From the sequence record MW349128.1: DNA of 64,000 nucleotides, one strand, 5' to 3'. A program made the translations under genes and the position numbers. The notes beneath the pieces were generated by a model. It had not been told where the DNA came from and ran no database searches. It was given only the letters and a program-made list of their open reading frames with translations. Shown here one piece after another: positions 1,701 to 62,230 of this stretch. Within the stretch, counting starts at the first letter, position 1. Every line of letters begins with the position of its first letter.

Positions 1701-3373
1701 ATGGTTAGATTTTTACTCAAGAAAAAGGATTTAGAAAATGTTCCAGTTGTAACTAATCATGAATCAATTGATAAGAAAGGTGATTTCACTGAAGATGGTA
1801 TCTTCAGTGAGAAAATCTTTGGTCCTGATTCAGAAGCAGATAATATTACTAATGAAGCTATTGTAGATTTAGGTAATAATTATATTTTAAATCCGTTAGG
1901 TTATGAACGTGTTAAAAAATTAATTGGTAATAAAAGATTCCAAGAAATTATTAGTTCTGAAAAACCTATTGATGAAAATGGTAATGTAATTGAACCTGAA
2001 GATGATCATAACTCTTATATTGGTTTAATTGAATTTAGAAAGAATTTCTTAAAAATTCTTAAAGAAGAAGTTAAACGTGAAAAACGTAAAACTAAAGATT
2101 ACAATAGAGTAGTACAATGGTATTTATCTGATTTACTATTCCAAAATTATGTAACTGTATTTAGTCCTAAATTAAGACCTGCTACAGTTAATAAAGCTAC
2201 TAAAACTTTTAGACATTCTGAAATTAATAAAGATTATAATTTATTAATTGCTCATAGTAATAGTATTAAAGAACTTGATAGACATTATACAGATGATTCA
2301 GTAGAGTTACAAAAATTAAATCTATTAAGTAAAATTCAAGATGATAGTATTAATATTAGTGATCGTGTAATTAATGAGAATATTAAAGGTAAAGGTGGAA
2401 CTATTCGTAAATTACTAATGGGTAGTCGTGTTGGTTTTTCTGCACGTTCAGTAATTGTTCCAGCACCTGATCTTAAATTAAATGAAATTAGATTAAATTA
2501 TACTATTTTCTTAGAAGTTTATAAACCTATCTTAGCAAATTTAATGTATGTAACAGAAAATATTCCTTTAGCTAAAGGTGAAGAAATATTAGACAGAGCA
2601 CTAGATACATTTAATCCTAAAGTATATAAATATATGAGAGAACTAGTTGATAAAACTGAAAATGGAATGAGAGTTATTTTAAATAGGAATCCCAGTATTA
2701 GTGAAAGCTCAGTTCAAATATTGAAAATTAAAGATATTATTCAAGATATAGAATCATCAGTAGTAGGTATTAGTAATAATATACTTGCTGGTATGGGTTA
2801 TAAAGGTAGCCTTTCATTATAGTGATATAATGTCAAAAGAATTTTAATTGCTGAGAAGATTATTAAATTAATCAGCATCGATCAAAATGATTGTTCAACG
2901 ACTAAATAAATTCACTCACTAATATGAGTTTGATATAGTCTAATCTTCATAGAAAAATCTCTATGAAGTTAATATACATGGCCGATTAAATAATAGTCGC
3001 TTTAAATTGAGAGATTTATAGAAAAGAATATTAATTGCTGAGAAGATTATTAAATTAATCAGCATCAAGTTAATACAATTTGTTCAACGACTAAATATAT
3101 TCTACCTTAAATGGTAATGATATAGTCTCGTCTATATGATAATATTTATATAGATTAAGATAAACGTATGATGGTGATACTTTAAATATTATAGCACTAT
3201 TTTCAGAAGAACAATACGAACAGTTAAAAGTTCAAGATCCAGTAAATCAATTAATTTCATATAATGATGGATTATTTAATAGAACTTACTCGCTTAATAA
3301 AGACTCACAAATAGCTGTTTATTTACTAAATAACCCTAAATCAAAAAATGTAGGTATTAAAGCTAGTGAATAA
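1701..3373 (+). CDS. rpoC: Non-virion RNA polymerase beta' subunit, N-terminal catalytic part. Spliced: join(1701..2798,2981..2986,3167..3373), 436 aa
   Basis: Motifs EDGIFSEKIFGP, LMGSRVGFSARSVIVP and LNRNPSI are present. Removing two group I introns restores ATG GGT GCC GAT TAT GAT GGT GAT = MGADYDGD (the NADFDGD motif) followed by TLNII...LLNN. Confidence 0.9.
2799..2980 (+). ncRNA. Group I mini-intron R1 (182 nt, no ORF) in RNAP beta'
   Basis: P1 GGU/UAU pairs with GUAGCC, with U-G at the splice site. Core motifs: ttaattgctgagaa (P), aatcagcat (Q), gttcaacgacta (R), gatatagtc (S). P3 gaattt/aaattc. Ends ...tacatG. Confidence 0.9.
2981..2986 (+). other. 6-nt micro-exon GCCGAT (Ala-Asp of the RNAP catalytic ADYDGD motif)
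   Basis: It lies between the terminal G of R1 and the P1 splice site of R2, and it supplies exactly the two missing motif residues in frame. Confidence 0.85.
2987..3166 (+). ncRNA. Group I mini-intron R2 (180 nt, no ORF) in RNAP beta'
   Basis: P1 CGAU/UA pairs with UAGUCG. P, Q, R and S motifs are present. P3 gaatat/atattc. Ends ...taaacG before TAT GAT GGT GAT. Confidence 0.9.
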
Positions 3374-3381
3374 GTAATTTT

Positions 3382-3408
3382 AATGGATAATCTTTATGAT
3401 TATCCATT
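3382..3408 (+). terminator. Probable intrinsic terminator after rpoC-like gene
   Basis: Stem aatggataatc/gattatccatt followed by a T-rich tract. Confidence 0.6.
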
Positions 3409-3444
3409 CTTATTATACTTTATAAATATGGAGGATTTTATAGA

Positions 3445-4020
3445 ATGATAAAATATAAAACGAATAATGAAAAGAATTTAATCGATATGGCTGAAAAATC
3501 GTTAGATATATTTTATGAAGAAATTTATAAAGAATTACTTAAGATTGATCAGGATTATATTAATCAAGATATTATTAATGATATTATAAAAGAATCTAAC
3601 ATTTTTAAAGATAATTCTAAAAAACATATTAAAAAGATTGTTAACAATGATATTAATAAAGTTGTAAGTGTAACTTTAACTACAACACATTATGAAATAT
3701 CTAGATTTTTATGTAATACTTTTGCTGAAAGACTTAATATGGTTTTAAATGCTTTATATAGAGTTAATAAAGGAACTTTAGGACATAAATATGAAAATGA
3801 ATCATTAGGAATAAGTGGTACTTATGATATAACTGATGGAATTAATACGTGGAAAAACGAATTAATTTCAGAAATATATAATACAACTAATTTCTTAGAA
3901 AATGTCATTAAAAGTAGAATTAGAAAATATATTAGAAGTAATTTTAATTATAAAAAATTAGATAATACTGGTGCTTATACATTTAACAATAATATTTTTA
4001 TTGATAGACTATTAAATTGA
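3445..4020 (+). CDS. Hypothetical protein
   Basis: 191-aa ORF with GGAGG RBS. Confidence 0.7.
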   Translation: MIKYKTNNEKNLIDMAEKSLDIFYEEIYKELLKIDQDYINQDIINDIIKESNIFKDNSKKHIKKIVNNDINKVVSVTLTTTHYEISRFLCNTFAERLNMVLNALYRVNKGTLGHKYENESLGISGTYDITDGINTWKNELISEIYNTTNFLENVIKSRIRKYIRSNFNYKKLDNTGAYTFNNNIFIDRLLN

Positions 4021-50923: not shown

Positions 50924-52258
50924 TTATTTAAAGTTTCTATAGAAATCATCAAGTCCATTAAGAACAGATTCTTCTAAGAAAACTTTAATAGTTTTATTAC
51001 TTTCTTTAATTGAAGCTAATTGAGATCCTTTATCGTAAATGATATTAGATTCATCAGCTTTATCAAATCCCATATCTTCAGCGATATATTTGATATTGTC
51101 TGAATTTTCTTTAATATAAGTTAAAACTTCTCTAGGAGAAAATTCTGTAACTTTACCGTTAGAAAACATATCAATTGATTCATTAACCATTTGTAAATCA
51201 CTAGTATTGTAATTATTATGATTCTCTGAAATTATATTTTGGATATAAGAATCTTGATGTGATGGAATTACACGTTATCTTAACTATATGATTTTCATAT
51301 AGACGAGACTATATCTTCCTAATTTATATTAGGTAATATATTTAGTCGTTGAACGGAATTTAATCCGATGCTGATTATCTTAATAAAGATTTCCAGCAAT
51401 TAATATTATTTATACTAAGCAATAATTTTTTACCCAGTCATACGTACATCTTAGCTATATGGTTTCCATATAGACGAGACTATATCATACTCTTAGTAAG
51501 AGCGAATATATTTAGTCGTTGAACAACTTGTATTAAGTTGATGCTAATTGGCTTAATTAAACTTCTTAGCAATTAATATTCTTTTTCATTATATATCACT
51601 ATATAAAGCTGCTATAATTTAACAGATTAATCTTAAAGGTTTAGTAACTTCTACTTCACCATTAGGTTTTCTTTCTATTTTACTAAAACCACGCATTGAG
51701 AAAGATACATCAGATTTTTGTCCAATTAAACCTTTCATATCCTTACCAGCTGATGTTTGAGCTGTTTCTACTTCTCCCATTAATTTATTACCATTCCACC
51801 AAGTTCTAGTGATAATATGAGAAATATTACGTTGATCAATATACATTTGACGTTTAGGTTCATCACTTAAAGGATGACCTGCAAATTATTATTCTTTATT
51901 ATTTTAATAAAGATTAGACTATATCATCTAGGTTATATATTTAGTCGTTGAACAACTTGTATTAAGTTGATGCTGATTACTTTAAATAAGATTTCAGCAA
52001 TTAATATAATTTAACGTGAGCCATTTTAACCTAAAACTCACCATAAAAAGTTCTTCTTGCTAATTTTTCTTGTACTACTGGACTATCTAAACCACTTTGG
52101 ATAACATCTTTACGATAAACACGACCATTACGGTTTTGTCTATCAGCTTCTTGTAACTCAGCAATGAATCTAACTGATTTATTATTATCTTGAACTACTT
52201 CTGGTTGAGAAGTTGTATTAGATTCATTAATAATGTAAGCTTTAATATCTTTAGACAT
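50924..52258 (-). CDS. Prohead core protease (T4 gp21-like). Spliced: complement join(52036..52258,51622..51881,51432..51442,50924..51272), 280 aa
   Basis: Motifs LQEADRQNRNGRVY, GESGHP, SFSMRG and CYDWVVIPSH are contiguous only after removing three group I introns. The exon sum of 843 nt is in frame. Confidence 0.88.
51273..51431 (-). ncRNA. Group I mini-intron PC (159 nt, no ORF) in protease
   Basis: P1 ACUGGGU/GCUUAGU; P10 GUAAU/AUUAU. P, Q, R and S motifs present. Ends ...taacG. Confidence 0.88.
51432..51442 (-). other. 11-nt micro-exon TATGACTGGGT (Y-D-W-V)
   Basis: Lies between the terminal G of PB and the P1 site of PC, and restores CYDWVVIPSH. Confidence 0.85.
51443..51621 (-). ncRNA. 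Group I mini-intron PB (179 nt, no ORF) in protease
   Basis: P1 CUGU/UA with UAGCAG. P4 covaries (ttgcta/ttagca). R and S motifs present. Ends ...gtacG. Confidence 0.88.
51882..52035 (-). ncRNA. Group I mini-intron PA (154 nt, no ORF) in protease
   Basis: P1 GUGAGU/GCUCAC with U-G; P10 CA/UG. P, Q, R and S motifs present. Ends ...aatttG. Confidence 0.88.
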
Positions 52259-55851: not shown

Positions 55852-55880
55852 ACCCATACATCTCTCTGAGGTGTATGGGT
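55852..55880 (+). terminator. Intrinsic terminator after capsid gene
   Basis: Stem acccatacatctc/gaggtgtatgggt plus T tract. Confidence 0.8.
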
Positions 55881-55908: not shown

Positions 55909-57078
55909 ATGGTATCTTTAAAAGAAGAAATACAATTAAATAAAATAAATAAAATAATGAACATCAATGAAGATGCATTTAACTTTGGTAAAAATACTTC
56001 ATTACTAAAAGAAATAGATGAAGAATTTGATTCATTAATTAGTAAATATAATTTTGAAAAATCTGATTTTGATGTAATTGATAAGAATGAATACAATGAT
56101 ATTGCAAAAAGAATATCAGATATTGCTAAGAAATTATTTAACACTAATATGAAATTAAAATTTATTGAAGCCGATAAGCGTGGAAAAGATAAATTTAGAG
56201 TAGGTTCAGTAGCACATACATTAATTAAACCTGAAGATATTAGAAATATTACAGATGGAATCACTAAAATTGTTATTGAAGAAAAAAATGGTATTTACTA
56301 TTCTAAACCTAGAGAAATTGAAGTAAATATTGAATTATCTTCATTGAGATATTTTATAGAAAAGAAAGAATCAGGTCAAAAAGAATTTACTACTCTTAAT
56401 GGTAGAATGTATACCTTTTTATTATTACATGAAATAGGTCATAATTTATTTTTCCCTGTAGAAATTAATGTACTCTCTGGTGGTAAAACTCCTACATTCG
56501 AACTCAAATATAAAGATAATAAACCAGTTCAGTTTAAGTACACTAAAGAAATAGAAGCTGACACTAGAAGAAATAGAGTATTAGCAGCTCCTATGATTCT
56601 TGCAATGTCAACATTAGTAATGTGTTTAACTGCTGTATTTATAGGTGCTAGCATATCAATGGGTTCATTTATGGGAACAGGAATGTTACTAACAAGTGCA
56701 AGTTTCAATAGAAAAACTACTATGGATTATAATCTTTCAGAAAGATCTGCCAACCAATTACCTGCTCTTTATGGATATTCTGTAGAAATGGTTAAATTTT
56801 ATGATTTAGTGTATAAAGCATTTAGAATGAAATCTGAAAAAAGACCTAATAACTTAATAGCTAAAGCTATGAGAGGACTTTTATATCCTATGAGTGGTTT
56901 TATTAAAAGTTATAAAGATTATCCAACAGATTCAATTGATGCAGTTATTAAGACATTAAAATTTGAAATTAGTAACAATAATAATTCTAATGAAGTTAAA
57001 AAAGAACTCAAAAGACAATTAGATGAAATTCAAAGAATAATAAAATATTCTAATAGACTTAATACTAAGACAAGATAG
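55909..57078 (+). CDS. Hypothetical protein with HExxH zinc-peptidase motif
   Basis: FLLLHEIGHNL, with later ERSANQL and a hydrophobic segment. Confidence 0.6.
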   Translation: MVSLKEEIQLNKINKIMNINEDAFNFGKNTSLLKEIDEEFDSLISKYNFEKSDFDVIDKNEYNDIAKRISDIAKKLFNTNMKLKFIEADKRGKDKFRVGSVAHTLIKPEDIRNITDGITKIVIEEKNGIYYSKPREIEVNIELSSLRYFIEKKESGQKEFTTLNGRMYTFLLLHEIGHNLFFPVEINVLSGGKTPTFELKYKDNKPVQFKYTKEIEADTRRNRVLAAPMILAMSTLVMCLTAVFIGASISMGSFMGTGMLLTSASFNRKTTMDYNLSERSANQLPALYGYSVEMVKFYDLVYKAFRMKSEKRPNNLIAKAMRGLLYPMSGFIKSYKDYPTDSIDAVIKTLKFEISNNNNSNEVKKELKRQLDEIQRIIKYSNRLNTKTR

Positions 57079-57092
57079 TAAGAAAGAAGTGA

Positions 57093-60000
57093 ATGAAGAC
57101 TATGGCTATAACAAAATTAAAGAAAAAAATTTATTACGATTATAAAACTAATAACGTAAGCTTTTTAAGAGTTGCTAAAGAACTTAAAGATAATAATATA
57201 CAAAATTATGGTCTACCATTAACTCTATATGATAAGAAATTAATTGGCGTTGATCCTTGGGATGAAGATTTAGATAATGAAATGAAAACTCGTGTTATTA
57301 GGGAAGCTAAACTTAATATATGGTTTTATTTAAGAGAAGTTATCAGAGTTCCAGTTCCAGGTGGTAAGGTAATGTATGAACTTCATAGAGGTAACTTAGC
57401 TATGACGTTTTGTATGCTGCATAATTTAGATACTGCAATAATGTTACCACGTCAGCACTATAAAACATATTCTGCAGTATGTTATTATTCATGGATTATG
57501 TTATTGGTAGGTAATAACTATACAATGTTATTTACACATAAATCATACTCGGACACTACTGAAAACCTTAAAAGATTAAAAAATCTATTCAAAGAGAAGT
57601 GTTTACCTGAATATGTATTAGCTAACTTTGGAGATAAAAATGATAGAGATAAAATTAATGAATTTTCTTTAGCAAGTAATAACAACACAATAAAAACAGT
57701 ATCACCTCCAACAAATGCTGAGAGTAAAATACGTGCTCTCATTAAACTCTATTAACTGCTGAAAAAGATACTAAACCAATCAGCATCAATCAAATTGATT
57801 GTTCAACGACTAAATATAGAGATAATTAATATTATAAGATATAGTCTAGTGTGTATGAATATCATACAATGTATTACGGCAAACAAAGCAGGAAGAGGTA
57901 GCACCGTATGTAGATGCAGTGCATAAAGATTTTTAATTGCTGGAAGACTAATAATGAAGTTAATCAGCATCACTTTAATTAGTGTTCAACGACTAAATAA
58001 AATCAATTTTAATAATTTTTACTGTTAACATTCCTTTATCAGTACGATAACGGAGGGATAAAATGCCTAAAGGTGTTAAAAGTAAAGAAAAATTCATAGA
58101 ACAAAAAAATAAAACTTTTAAAGAAATAAAAGATATCAATGGAGATAAATTTGAAATACTGGGAGAGTATAAAAATTCTAAAGAACCAATTAAATGTCAT
58201 TGTAATATATGTGATAGAGATTTTTTCTTACCTACTGAAAAACTAAGATTAAAAAGAAAATTCTGTAATAGAAAAGATTGTAGATATTCAGAAAAACCCA
58301 AGAATTCTAAAGGTAAAGAAACTTTTTTAATAGAATTAAAAGATAAGTTCGGATTTAATTATACTTATATTGAAGGATTCAATGGAATGAATAAAAAGTG
58401 TAGATTCCGTTGTGGAAAATGTGGAAATATAAGATATTTTGCAAAGCCTTCTACTCTAATGGATAAAAGAAAGAAGTATAATTCAGTAAACTGTAACAGA
58501 TGTATAAATAATGAAAATTATATCATATTAGATAGTCAAGAATTATCTAAAAAGACAACAGAAGAGTTTCAAGGTGAATTAGATATGATATTTGGATATA
58601 ATAAATTTAATGTGTTAACTGAATATACTAGGAGCAAAGATTATATCTATTTGAAGAGTAATGACTGTGGACACAAATTTAAAACGAGACCAGATGATAT
58701 ACTTAAAAGAAAAAGATGTAGTGTATGTTCTAAAAGTATAGGAGAAATTGCCATCATTGAATTACTTCAAGAGAATAATGTAGAATATGAGAATGAAGTT
58801 ACTTTTGAAGGATCTAGTTTTAGATTTGATTTTTATTTTAAAAAAATAAATACTGTAGTTGAAGTAGATGGAAAAGGTCATATAAAAGGTTATGGAAATT
58901 TCATTAATGATAAAAGAAACAAAAGCAAAAGAACACCTGAAGATATAAAAAAATTAGATAATGAAAAAGATGAATTTATAAGAAGCAAAGGAATAAATAT
59001 GATACGTCTCCCTTACCAGAATAGAATAAATGAAGAATTAATTATCCCTATGAAAAAATTATTAAAATTATGATATAGTCTGATCTGCATGGATTATCAT
59101 GTAGTTTAACGTAAATGACCTATGGTTTGGCTTGATGAGTGGGCGTTTATACCGCATAATCAAGTAATGTTTGAAGCGATGAGTAAAAAGGCTCCATCTT
59201 TATAGAAATATAGATGATGAATAATATTAACTGCTGAAAAGTTTAAAAACCAATCAGCATCATTAAATAATGTTCAACGACTAAATTTATTAAATCTTAA
59301 AAAGATTATGATATAGTCTGATCTGCATGGATTATCATGCAGCTAACATAAATGACCAGCAATAAGTACAGCTTCAAGAATTGCAAAAGAAAATGGTTCT
59401 CCTTATGGACTTCTTATCACAACTACACCTAAAATGACTGGGTGAAGATAAATTAAAATTTATCTTAAGGACTTTATTAATTGCTGAAAGGTCCTTAGAG
59501 CTTAATGAGCTACAACGTGACTGGCAACAGTGAGCGTGATATGCTTAAAAATCATTAAGATTGGAAAATCAGCAGCTAATTTTCAATTTAATAAATTATT
59601 AAATCAATAATGAACAACTCTTTATACAAAAGATGTAGGAGTTGGTAATTTTGGATTTTTATGAAAAATTAAATAAAAAATTTGATAACAGTATAATAAC
59701 AAAAGAAAAATATATAAACGGCAATGAAAAGATTAAATTCTATTGTAAAAATTGTAAAAATTATTTTTATTCTAAACCTAGAAAAATTATTGAATCATCT
59801 TATAAATCATGTCATTTATGTAGGAAAAGGGAAAAAGAAAATATATTTAGGAATAATCTCATTAATATGATAAATAAAGAAATATATGAAATTATTGAAA
59901 TGAAAGATCCTATAAAAAATAATGAAAAATTTTCTTTAAAACATAAAGAATGTGGAAATATCTTTTCTATATCAGTGAGTAATTTTAAAAAAGGAAGAAA

Positions 60001-62190
60001 ATGCCCATATTGCTCAAATAAGCCTATGAAAAGGGATCAAAATTTCTTTTTAGAAAAAATAAATAATATTGATTCAAGTTTCTTAAAAGAATATGAATTA
60101 AAAAGCAATTATATAAGCGTTAACGAAAATATTAAAATTAAACATAAAGAATGTGGAAATATCTTTAATACTACCCCTAATAGAATTTATAGAGGTAATA
60201 GATGTAGTATGTGTTCACATAAATCTGATAAATATAATTTTAAAGAGGTAAAGAGTATAATAGAAAAAGATGGAAAATTTAAACTTTTATCTAATAATTA
60301 TATAAATAATAAATATAAATTAAAAATAAAATGTCTTAACTGTGGTAATATACAAGAGAAAAGTTTAGTTACATTTCAAGATAAAAGAAATAGAAAATGT
60401 ATATGTGAAAAATATTCTTTACCAATTCGTTATATAACAAATTTTTTAATAGATAAAAATATAAATTTTGAGCTAGAAAAAAGATTTGATAATTGTAGAA
60501 ATATTAGACCTTTACCCTTCGATATTTTTATAAATGATTTTAATATTCTAATTGAATATGATGGGGAACAACATTTTAAACCAATATATGGTATAGAAAA
60601 ACTCAATAAAACTAAAATAAATGATGAAATAAAAAATAATTTTTGTAATAAAGAAGGAATAGAATTAATTAGAATAAACTGTTATGATAATTATGAAGAT
60701 AAAATTGAAAATTTAGTTCAACGACTATCGAAAGTTGAGTATACATCGTGAGGATATATACAATATAAATGAGTAGAGTACAGCCAAGCGGTTAGTTTTT
60801 AAGTGATATTAGCTTAATATAATTCTATTAAATGGAAACATAAAGACGTGTATATTAACACATATACGTAAGATATAGTCTCAACGTTTAGGGAAAACCT
60901 AAAGAAGTTCATAAGAGAACTGGTATAGATTAGCGATCTATATTGAAGATTTTGAGTACTCTCGACACATCTCAAGGGCAATTTTTCTTTCAACAAATGA
61001 ATGAAGCAGCTCAATGGAATGAAAAAATATATGATTATTTTATTGATAGTGAAGAAGAAGGAAATTCTAAATTAGAAAAATACATGGAAGATAATTCAAA
61101 TAATGAATTCATGTATATAGAATATTCATATAAAGAATTAGGTAAAGATGAAAATTGGTTAGAAAAACAAAAGAGACAAATTGGTTCTTTAGAAGCTGTT
61201 AAACGTGAGATATTATTGGAATGGGCTTATAGTTCTGATGATTCATTATTCTCTGAAGAACAAATGACTGAAATATCTATGTATGCTAATAAAGAAATAT
61301 ATAATACTCTTGAATTTAATATTGATGGTAGAACTTATTATGTAAATATGATTAAATATATGGATAATATTACAGAGAAAAATTGGCTTATTGGTATTGA
61401 TATGTCTGGTGGTTTAGGACGAGATAATACAGCGTTTACTGTAGTGGATCCAGCTACTTTGGAACCAGTAATGACTTTTAAAAATAATGTAATTAATGGA
61501 CCTACATTCAGAAAATTAATTAAAGAATTGGTTAGTTTCTATATACCTAACGCTATATTAATACCTGAACGTAACTATGCAGGTTTAACAGTAATTGATC
61601 ATATGATATCTTATGATGGTTTAGAATCTAATTTATTCTATACGCTTAAAACTCGTGTAGCTGAAAAGCAAGTAGAAAATAAAAGTTTATTTAATGAAAT
61701 GTCTAGATATAGCAAAACTGAAAAAGTTAAAAAAGAAACTCGTAGATATGGTATTGATACAACTAAAAAATCTCGTGATATAATGTTAAATGAAATATTA
61801 TCTATGCTTGTTGAAGAAAAACCACATTTAATTAATAATAAACCACTTTTCCAAGAAATCAAATCTTTACAAATGATTAAAGGACGTATTGACCATCCAC
61901 CGGGAGGTCACGATGACTTAATGATGTCTTATTTATTCTGTTTATATGCGTATTACTATGAAAAAGATATTAATAAATTTGTAAAAATTAAATATGGTTC
62001 TAAACTCTCACCTAACAGTGAAAATGCAGAAGGAATGAAAAAAGAACAAGAAGCTAGAAGAAAAGATATTGCTTCAATTAAACGTATCAATAGTGTTATT
62101 GAAGGAAATGATATGAGTAATTCTATATTTGGTCAACAACAAAAACCAATGGATAACAATAATAAACGTATTATGGATTTATTCAAATAA
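57093..62190 (+). CDS. terL: Terminase large subunit. Spliced: join(57093..57725,57879..57907,59118..59184,59356..59430,60955..62190), 679 aa
   Basis: Walker A-like LPRQHYKT, then AGRGSTVP, Walker B VWLDEWAF, motif C LITTTP and nuclease IGIDMSGGLGRD and HDDLMM. The central motifs become contiguous only after removing four introns. Confidence 0.88.
57726..57878 (+). ncRNA. Group I mini-intron T1 (153 nt, no ORF) in terminase
   Basis: P1 UGAGAGU/GCUCUCA; P3 ctctat/atagag. P, Q, R and S motifs present. Ends ...ttacG. Confidence 0.9.
57879..57907 (+). other. 29-nt micro-exon (ANKAGRGSTV)
   Basis: In frame between T1 and T2. Confidence 0.85.
57908..59117 (+). mobile_element. Group I intron T2 (1210 nt), mini-intron-type core with a homing endonuclease ORF in the P8 loop
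   Basis: P1 GCACCGU/GCAGUGC. R motif lies before the ORF and S motif overlaps its stop codon. Ends ...aaatG. Confidence 0.88.
58063..59073 (+). CDS. Intron-encoded putative homing endonuclease (Cys-rich repeats plus Vsr/DUF559-like nuclease domain)
   Basis: Multiple CxxC motifs; C-terminal FRFDFYF...VVEVDGKGH...IRLPY. Confidence 0.8.
   Translation: MPKGVKSKEKFIEQKNKTFKEIKDINGDKFEILGEYKNSKEPIKCHCNICDRDFFLPTEKLRLKRKFCNRKDCRYSEKPKNSKGKETFLIELKDKFGFNYTYIEGFNGMNKKCRFRCGKCGNIRYFAKPSTLMDKRKKYNSVNCNRCINNENYIILDSQELSKKTTEEFQGELDMIFGYNKFNVLTEYTRSKDYIYLKSNDCGHKFKTRPDDILKRKRCSVCSKSIGEIAIIELLQENNVEYENEVTFEGSSFRFDFYFKKINTVVEVDGKGHIKGYGNFINDKRNKSKRTPEDIKKLDNEKDEFIRSKGINMIRLPYQNRINEELIIPMKKLLKL
59185..59355 (+). 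ncRNA. Group I mini-intron T3 (171 nt, no ORF) in terminase; 3' boundary anomalous
   Basis: P1 GAUG-AGU/GCU-C-CAUC. P, Q, R and S motifs present. Frame requires the exon to resume at CCA 59356, which makes A59355 the terminal base. Confidence 0.8.
59431..60954 (+). mobile_element. Group I intron T4 (1524 nt), full-size phage IA2-like, with a homing endonuclease ORF in the P6 region
   Basis: P1 CACCU/GGGUG; P10 AGU/ACU. Extended P5, aatcagcagc, gttcaacgactatcg, gtacagccaagcgg (P7.1/7.2 region), aagatatagtc and several P9 helices. Ends ...ttttG. Confidence 0.88.
59642..60751 (+). CDS. Intron-encoded putative homing endonuclease (Cys-rich repeats plus Vsr/DUF559-like nuclease domain)
   Basis: Repeated KHKECGNIF...CxxC; C-terminal LPFDIFI...LIEYDGEQHF. 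The 3' end overlaps the intron R motif. Confidence 0.82.
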   Translation: MVILDFYEKLNKKFDNSIITKEKYINGNEKIKFYCKNCKNYFYSKPRKIIESSYKSCHLCRKREKENIFRNNLINMINKEIYEIIEMKDPIKNNEKFSLKHKECGNIFSISVSNFKKGRKCPYCSNKPMKRDQNFFLEKINNIDSSFLKEYELKSNYISVNENIKIKHKECGNIFNTTPNRIYRGNRCSMCSHKSDKYNFKEVKSIIEKDGKFKLLSNNYINNKYKLKIKCLNCGNIQEKSLVTFQDKRNRKCICEKYSLPIRYITNFLIDKNINFELEKRFDNCRNIRPLPFDIFINDFNILIEYDGEQHFKPIYGIEKLNKTKINDEIKNNFCNKEGIELIRINCYDNYEDKIENLVQRLSKVEYTS

Positions 62191-62198
62191 AATATATA

Positions 62199-62230
62199 AG
62201 AGTAATGATGATTAACTTCGTCATTACTCT
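62199..62230 (+). terminator. Terminator after terminase
   Basis: Stem agagtaatga.g/c.tcattactct plus T-rich tail. Confidence 0.7.

Follow-up and report, generated by a model that had tools for sequence, protein, structure and literature searches.

Five exons and four group I introns in the terminase large subunit gene of Staphylococcus phage Machias

The DNA analysed here, a stretch of 64,000 nucleotides from sequence record MW349128.1 (hereafter the window), belongs to Staphylococcus phage Machias, a 274-kb jumbo phage of the AR9/PBS1-like type, and its positions 57,093 to 62,190 hold the gene for the large subunit of the terminase (TerL). Over this 5.1-kb region, identity to the Machias record is 100% at matching coordinates. 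GenBank lists two 'terminase large subunit' fragments at this locus (57102-57755 and 60997-62190), with a 'homing endonuclease' and a hypothetical protein between them. The authors who described Machias noted that introns disrupt TerL and stated that the mature peptide 'could not be confidently reconstructed', there being no intact homologue at the time (bioRxiv 10.1101/2020.12.14.422802). Such homologues have since become available: phages SA1, S6 and DC4 each have an intact TerL gene of 2034 nt. A tblastn search of the window with the intact SA1 protein (locus L004, 1509-3539) returned five collinear blocks, and the exact junctions were read by comparison with the intron-less DNA of SA1 and S6. 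The five exons join into 2040 nt including the stop codon (679 codons plus stop), encoding a protein of 679 amino acids; its alignment with SA1 TerL shows identity in 543 of 680 columns (80%). All four cuts fall between mRNA nucleotides 633 and 804, a span of 57 codons. The features of the locus, and other introns of the window, are listed in Table 1.

Table 1. Coordinates of the terminase exons, introns and intron genes, and of other features in the window (R1, covariance model of the compact intron core; ORF, open reading frame)
Feature	Position	Strand	Description
TerL exon 1 (E1)	57093-57725	+	633 nt; Walker A LPRQHYKT; 90% identity to SA1 (tblastn)
Intron T1	57726-57878	+	153 nt; ORF-less; ends in G; R1 109.9 bits
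TerL exon 2 (E2)	57879-57907	+	29 nt; ANKAGRGST and two bases of a Val codon
Intron T2	57908-59117	+	1210 nt; compact core, endonuclease gene in the P8 loop (L8)
T2 endonuclease	58063-59073	+	336 aa; stop codon overlaps J8/7; GenBank 'homing endonuclease'
TerL exon 3 (E3)	59118-59183/4	+	66 or 67 nt; Walker B and catalytic Glu, WLDEWAF
Intron T3	59185-59354 (U/G rule)	+	170 nt, 171 nt for frame; ORF-less; R1 116.7 bits
TerL exon 4 (E4)	59355/6-59430	+	76 or 75 nt; 3' end is motif C, LLITTTP
Intron T4	59431-60954	+	1524 nt; full-size AR9-type group I, endonuclease gene inside
T4 endonuclease	59642-60751	+	369 aa from TTG 59642; GenBank ATG 59651, 366 aa
TerL exon 5 (E5)	60955-62190	+	1236 nt including stop; C-terminal nuclease half
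Terminator-like hairpin	62199-62230	+	directly 3' of TerL
Terminator-like hairpin, partner	55852-55880		3' of capsid gene
Non-virion RNA polymerase beta' gene, introns	gene from 1701; introns 2799-2980, 2987-3166	+	182 nt and 180 nt; canonical boundaries, in frame
Prohead scaffold/protease gene, introns	gene 50924-52258; introns 52035-51882, 51621-51443, 51431-51273	-	154 nt, 179 nt and 159 nt; compact

The joined reading frame has the motif order and the PHROG terminase profiles of a large terminase of the phage T4 gp17 type. Alignment of SA1 TerL to gp17 (3EZK) matches SRQLGKT, IYIDECAFIP and ITTTP and gives the order Walker A, Walker B, motif C and C-terminal nuclease; by the same comparison, Walker A lies in exon 1 of Machias, the GRG motif in exon 2, Walker B with the catalytic Glu in exon 3 and the TTT of motif C in exon 4. 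Exon 1, for which GenBank begins the coding sequence at the second ATG (57102), matches the terminase large subunit profile phrog_32359 (E 1e-54), and exon 5, 74% identical to SA1 residues 267-677 by tblastn, matches the terminase profiles phrog_2 and phrog_24361; the Pfam model Terminase_6N scored only 14.7 bits, under its cut-off. At the protein level, the three micro-exons have tblastn identities to SA1 of 10/10, 20/21 and 21/25 (exons 2, 3 and 4), and the protein segment encoded by exon 2 is identical in SA1 and S6. A terminator scan reported no other terminator-like site between the hairpins at 55852-55880 and 62199-62230, the TerL introns included, which is consistent with one precursor RNA across TerL.

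All four intervening sequences are introns of group I. Three of them (T1, T2 and T3) fall into a compact family whose members have P1, P3, a 6-bp P4, a P5 hairpin of 3-5 bp, P6, P7, P8 and one P9, without P7.1 or P7.2, and which share a set of core strings: the P4 hairpin UGCUGA...UCAGCA, GUUCAACGACUAA as the 5' strand of P7, GAUAUAGUCU as J8/7 plus the 3' strand of P7, a P9 hairpin and a terminal G. In the window, GUUCAACGACUAA occurs nine times, against 1.2 occurrences expected. T1 consists of P1, P3, P4, P6, P7, P8 and P9 and nothing else, with no convincing P5; its exon GAGAGU pairs with GCUCUC to place a U·G pair at the splice site, and the unconstrained minimum free energy fold gives P1, P3, P4, P6, P8 and P9, which are all of the nested helices. 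T2 forms P1 from GCACCGU and GCAGUGC, and its P8 stem (~58005-58018 with ~59053-59065) is a 13-bp duplex that closes the loop containing the endonuclease gene. The minimum free energy fold of T3 contains P1 (GAGU/GCUC), an extra P2 hairpin, P4, P5, P8 and P9. Pairing of the last exon base, U, with the internal-guide G in P1 was seen for T1, T2 and T4; in T3 this U·G pair exists, but its use breaks the frame. The terminal G stands at the family-tail position in all four introns.

Covariation gives strong support to the compact fold. Our first fold alignment comprised 18 ORF-less compact introns from Machias and its relatives, from which RNAalifold unaided recovered P4, P6, P7, P8 and P9; P3, a pseudoknot, and P5 were added to this structure before pairs were counted. 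Across the 18 introns, 93.6% of cells were paired, compared with 75.3% after shuffling and 29-44% in slid controls, and 21 of 37 pairs change on both sides. For 68 distinct sequences including copies from IMG/VR, 94.5% of cells were paired against 61.7% after shuffling, with 28 of 32 pairs changing on both sides, although this alignment was fitted to the model described next, which flatters its pairing counts; slid controls over the two alignments gave 29-47%. Because P7 never varies across the compact family, this helix is backed by sequence only. A covariance model of the compact core built from the 18-intron alignment (R1) gave 110 bits for T1 (E about 1e-19) and 117 bits for T3, matched T2 in two halves (57925-58037, 70.6 bits, and 59039-59118, 36.6 bits; 71 and 37 when rounded) and detected only the 3' part of T4, at 23.5 bits. 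The scores of T1 and T3, together with the identity of the micro-exons to SA1, show that the five-exon map did not arise by chance. In whole-genome blastn searches with T3, we found about 20 copies in Machias, 21 in LY01, 19 in AH12, 12 in PB50 and 4-5 in Madawaska and MarsHill; none was reported in SA1, S6, DC4 or PALS_2.

Intron T4 is built on a larger plan. Its P1 (CACCU with GGGUG) has a U before the intron and its last base is a G, both in frame, and it has P3 (59472-59477 with 60840-60845) and a P4 (59481-59487 with 59569-59575) that encloses a P5 extension of ~75 nt. Folding placed hairpins at the P7.1/7.2 position in the ~110 nt between P7 (60716-60728) and the 3' strand of P3 (60840), and also gave P2, P8, P9, P9.1 and P9.2. 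Its 3' half shares 78-80% identity with the corresponding halves of all four TerL introns of the Bacillus phage AR9. Rfam had no match to T4 because of the ORF inside it. On the strength of these folds, T4 would be classed as a phage intron of the IA type with P7.1/P7.2. A first-pass annotation made from the letters alone had described a terminase ATPase domain with five exons and four introns, cut within about 60 codons, with internal exons of 29, 67 and 75 nt. The SA1 blocks, the junctions and the intron folds bear this map out, and the 2040-nt spliced frame on which that annotation had staked its reading was recovered by computation. It was also right that T1, T2 and T3 have a compact core, as R1 scores and folds agree, and that T4 is a full-size intron, as its folds and its homology to the AR9 introns indicate. 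Its division of the introns into two classes captures a real structural distinction, but both are group I and share P4, P7 and J8/7 core sequences, so they are not unrelated types.

The same annotation missed that T3, if it is to be spliced in frame, must depart from the rule that a U precedes the intron and a G closes it. T1, T2, T4 and five other compact introns in the window obey this rule in frame, as do all four introns of AR9 TerL and those of LY01, MarsHill, AH12 and Madawaska. T3 lies in the context AUGAGU/AAAAAGGCUC...AUAAAUG/ACCAGC (slashes at the positions that the rule would give), and the intron-less alleles read AUGAGACCAGC. The in-frame product needs a one-nucleotide non-canonical splice site, and two one-base shifts restore the frame: cleavage after G59183, which yields Arg at the junction, or an intron end at A59355, which yields Ser. 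Other U/G pairs near T3 were inspected and rejected; the only in-frame pair (after GCGAU) lacks a supporting P1 and deletes a conserved residue, and the others give stops. The independent isolate PB50 has T3 junction sequences identical to those of Machias, and we therefore rejected a sequencing error as the source of the frameshift. In the TerL frame, PB50 and Machias differ at two positions in exon 3 and seven in exon 4, and all nine differences are synonymous, which indicates that both exons are translated in frame. A blastn search for a closer relative of T3 that might show the ancestral 5' end found none above 77% identity except in PB50. T3 has a chimeric appearance, suggestive of recent recombination: T1 is the nearest match to its 5' half (82% identity), and its 3' tail shares 93% identity with the tail of T2. 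PB50 and Machias also differ in the P9 loop of T3 (59330-59335), which reads GATTAT in Machias; PB50 has ATAATC, the exact reverse complement, on an unchanged stem, a hairpin-loop inversion.

These results support a model in which, very probably, Machias has one TerL gene that is transcribed into a single precursor RNA, from which removal of four group I introns would restore the 679-residue TerL; guanosine-dependent self-splicing of the introns is a prediction. The two TerL fragments and two intervening ORFs in GenBank would also suit a gene whose pieces are never spliced and are made as separate polypeptides that assemble, the intervening DNA being inert insertions or free-standing endonuclease cassettes. 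However, the pieces of 29, 67 and 75 nt lack their own start codons and ribosome-binding sites, the micro-exons encode GRG, Walker B and motif C under purifying selection, and every gap coincides exactly with a group I fold bounded as expected. We rejected this arrangement, which is scarcely conceivable for micro-exons without start signals. Several observations do weigh against a spliced TerL with an in-frame T3. Splicing of the Machias introns, like the activity of the two intron endonucleases, is inferred from DNA sequence, and a search for related solved structures of either endonuclease returned spurious matches only. Rfam gave no intron match over the window or over the 5.5-kb region, at the gathering threshold or with E up to 10; when T1 was searched alone in a 181-nt stretch, Intron_gpI (RF00028) aligned over its full length and kept the assigned register (E 7e-5), but at 25.3 bits it fell short of the 50-bit threshold. 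Three further points concern T3. Cutting after U59184 and G59354, as the U/G rule would have it, leaves one base too many, a +1 frameshift in a 2041-nt mRNA with a stop at codon 269. The P1 helix of T3 puts the U·G wobble at U59184, favouring cleavage after that U and not after G59183. Finally, AR9 and Goe21 have Ala at the T3 junction codon, so Arg is not kept outside the Staphylococcus clade; the junction residue is not universally constrained, and the argument from Arg is not decisive.

For T3 itself, we consider cleavage after G59183 most likely, in which case in-frame joining would make U59184 the first intron base and the junction mRNA would be identical to the intron-less allele. Arg occupies this codon in all eight Staphylococcus relatives (as AGA, AGG or CGU), and all other members of the family have G as their last base, behind a comparable tail of 11-13 nt, a length that in T3 fits G59354. 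The exon sizes of the first-pass annotation instead imply removal of 59185-59355, which would leave A as the last intron base and AGU (Ser) as the codon at the junction. This keeps the U before the intron and the P1 wobble and restores the frame, and the junction residue does vary in distant TerL proteins. Against it, P7 is identical throughout the family while all other members end in G, the T3 tail length and the Arg of the eight close relatives point elsewhere, and in group I chemistry the terminal G is bound by the P7 site and hardly ever varies. An intron that ends in A is unlikely. If T3 instead followed the ordinary rule at both ends, most of the mRNA would be frameshifted, and a small share of mis-spliced transcripts, or +1 frameshifting by the ribosome, would have to supply full-length TerL. 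T3 would then be either a recent, poorly adapted insertion or a means of reducing how much TerL is made. The wobble at U59184, the terminal G kept across the whole family, the 2041 nt given by canonical joining and the chimeric make-up of T3 would all fit such a scheme. It is nevertheless distinctly improbable, given that the same junction occurs in two independently isolated viable phages whose flanking exons differ only synonymously, that TerL is essential for packaging and that no frameshift signal was identified. A bolder proposal, which we regard as possible but doubtful, goes beyond cleavage after G59183: T3 would be spliced accurately after a G with its own first U in the wobble position, and it and the other ORF-less members of the family (127-171 nt, some of which lack P2 or P9) would count as the smallest group I ribozymes capable of self-splicing, working between exons of 6-29 nt.

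Both endonuclease ORFs of the TerL introns sit in ribozyme loops, and the 3' end of the T4 endonuclease gene overlaps the 5' strand of P7 (60716-60728). The T2 enzyme matches phrog_559 (E 4e-36) and also phrog_9084, a homing endonuclease family; the T4 enzyme matches phrog_559 (E 1e-78) and has weak Pfam matches to the DUF4379 zinc finger and to DUF2726. The two are 31% identical over the nuclease domain and are distant paralogues. By these profile matches, both belong to the homing endonuclease family phrog_559, which PMC11878797 describes as having a Vsr-like fold and as sitting specifically in TerL introns of Bacillus phages. The T2 and T4 endonucleases presumably cut intron-less TerL alleles of co-infecting relatives and so drive homing. 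T1 and T3 have no endonuclease gene and lie within 30-70 nt of T2. Co-conversion during the homing of T2 would carry them over too, and their presence may also abolish sites at which other endonucleases cut.

The distribution of introns among relatives, which the first-pass annotation had put forward as a check, is patchy. SA1, S6 and DC4 have no TerL introns; PALS_2 has an intron at the T4 site only, with an endonuclease gene (1511 nt); and PB50 has T1, T2 and T3 and lacks T4. Introns also occur in AH12 (206 nt at the G/R site and a compact one of 156 nt at the T4 site), in MarsHill (127 nt at G/R, 157 nt at V/P and 159 nt at MRP/A) and in Madawaska (1253 nt with an endonuclease gene at G/R and 159 nt at V/P). 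LY01 has introns at the three MarsHill sites (127, 156 and 160 nt) and a compact one of 161 nt at the T4 site, which makes four compact introns in the ATPase region, and a fifth interruption further downstream at codons 540/541. Across these ten Staphylococcus jumbo phages, Machias included, there are six distinct TerL sites within ~57 codons. An exon of just 14 nt separates the first intron from the second in LY01, MarsHill and Madawaska; the preceding G/R intron of LY01 (L007 2750-2876) and MarsHill (L009 2611-2737) is 127 nt, has no P9 and ends in G 12 nt after P7. The intron density that had been called unusual is unusual in general but recurrent in this clade, as the LY01 introns and the five-piece TerL of AR9 illustrate.

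The TerL gene of PALS_2 is ~100% identical to those of S6 and DC4 over most of its length and only 80-86% identical in the 200 nt upstream of its intron. This low-identity tract covers exon nucleotides 601-800, adjoins the intron (2292-3802 in locus L003) and resembles the LY01 and MarsHill exons joined without their introns. Such a tract has the signature expected of exon co-conversion during homing. Together with the patchy occupancy, it supports a model in which these introns would spread by the action of their endonucleases, and neighbouring introns without an ORF could travel within the co-converted tract.

The closest known counterpart of the Machias gene is the TerL of AR9 (AR9_g121, KU878088), which is annotated as a five-piece join. 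It has four introns of 289-320 nt (L116 701-2087) at G/R, at W/Y inside Walker B, at A/S and after TTTP, all with canonical junctions, and internal exons of 28, 44 and 84 nt. Thus the same gene in the same clade carries four group I introns in the same ~55 codons of the ATPase centre, and two sites, G/R and the one after TTTP (the T4 site), are shared with the Staphylococcus phages. With a five-exon TerL already on record in AR9, the nearest relative to have been well studied, the arrangement in Machias is of a known kind and its novelty is limited. AR9 differs in that its four introns all belong to the 290-320 nt type, without a full endonuclease gene in any of them (only a 120-nt ORF, g122, is annotated), whereas Machias uses three other sites (S/A, V/P and MR/P), with three compact introns, two endonuclease genes and a non-canonical junction at T3.

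Group I introns are familiar from other phages, as in orf142 of phage Twort, which has three, and in the td, nrdB and sunY genes of phage T4; the J8/7-P7-P9 sequence of introns T2 and T3 appears to resemble that of the td intron closely. The Azoarcus tRNA-Ile intron, of ~205 nt, is usually cited as the minimal self-splicing group I intron. The compact introns are similarly small ribozymes with few peripheral elements, but T1 has 153 nt and the G/R (site-b) intron of LY01 and MarsHill only 127 nt and no P9, self-splicing of these being predicted. A literature search on the smallest group I intron returned nothing usable. In the huge 'Jug' phages of the gut, 2513 introns with a mean of ~206 nt have been reported, with many short ORF-less group I introns per genome, and terL occurs in two or three fragments, with splicing confirmed for part by metatranscriptome reads (PMC12880540). 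Compared with these, the Staphylococcus phage introns are shorter (127-206 nt), and Machias TerL has four. The core strings of the compact family were found in 100 IMG/VR stretches, 90 of the 100 being listed, on metagenomic phage contigs mostly of 200-400 kb. In ~530 kb of DNA that included 50 of these stretches, R1 detected 161 copies, often in tandem and ~220 nt apart. Runs of four to six copies at this spacing, which imply many more micro-exon arrays, were seen at IMG/VR loci in the set L011-L090 (for example, L031 7129-7953, L058 3203-4027 and L018 3375-4203). For the Bastillevirinae and other Bacillus phages, passages of PMC11878797 report TerL genes with two or three introns and, as in Machias, group I introns in conserved enzyme motifs; the introns average ~800 nt, and internal exons of 6-29 nt are not described in those passages.

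Compact introns also interrupt two other genes of the window (Table 1). In the gene for the non-virion RNA polymerase beta' subunit, a micro-exon of 6 nt, GCCGAT (2981-2986), lies between the two introns and falls within the catalytic ADYDGD motif; the GenBank coding sequence ends at 2822, and the last exon (~3167-3370) is unannotated. The prohead scaffold/protease gene contains an 11-nt micro-exon, TATGACTGGGT, at 51442-51432, and since GenBank joins only three pieces for this gene, the micro-exon may have been missed. Directly upstream of TerL, a gene annotated as hypothetical (55909-57078, plus strand) has a HEIGH zinc-protease-like motif and a weak match to the DUF4344 metallopeptidase family (E 0.004).

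In summary, our analysis maps all terminase exons of Machias and PB50 for the first time and corrects the annotation to five exons in place of two fragments. The ATPase centre of TerL is a recurrent target of introns, with six sites in ten Staphylococcus jumbo phages and two more in AR9; the Machias gene contributes three insertion sites not seen in AR9 and mixes compact and AR9-type introns within one gene. For specialists, the interest lies in the size of the ribozymes (153 nt here and 127 nt in LY01 and MarsHill), in the very short exons and in the non-canonical T3 junction, which bears on whether natural introns can break the U·G rule at the 5' splice site. The compact introns and tiny exons set practical lower limits on the RNA that a group I ribozyme, with its P1 and P10 contacts, requires. 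With variable occupancy and a visible co-conversion tract, these phages lend themselves to work on the spread of introns among jumbo phages that infect the same cell.

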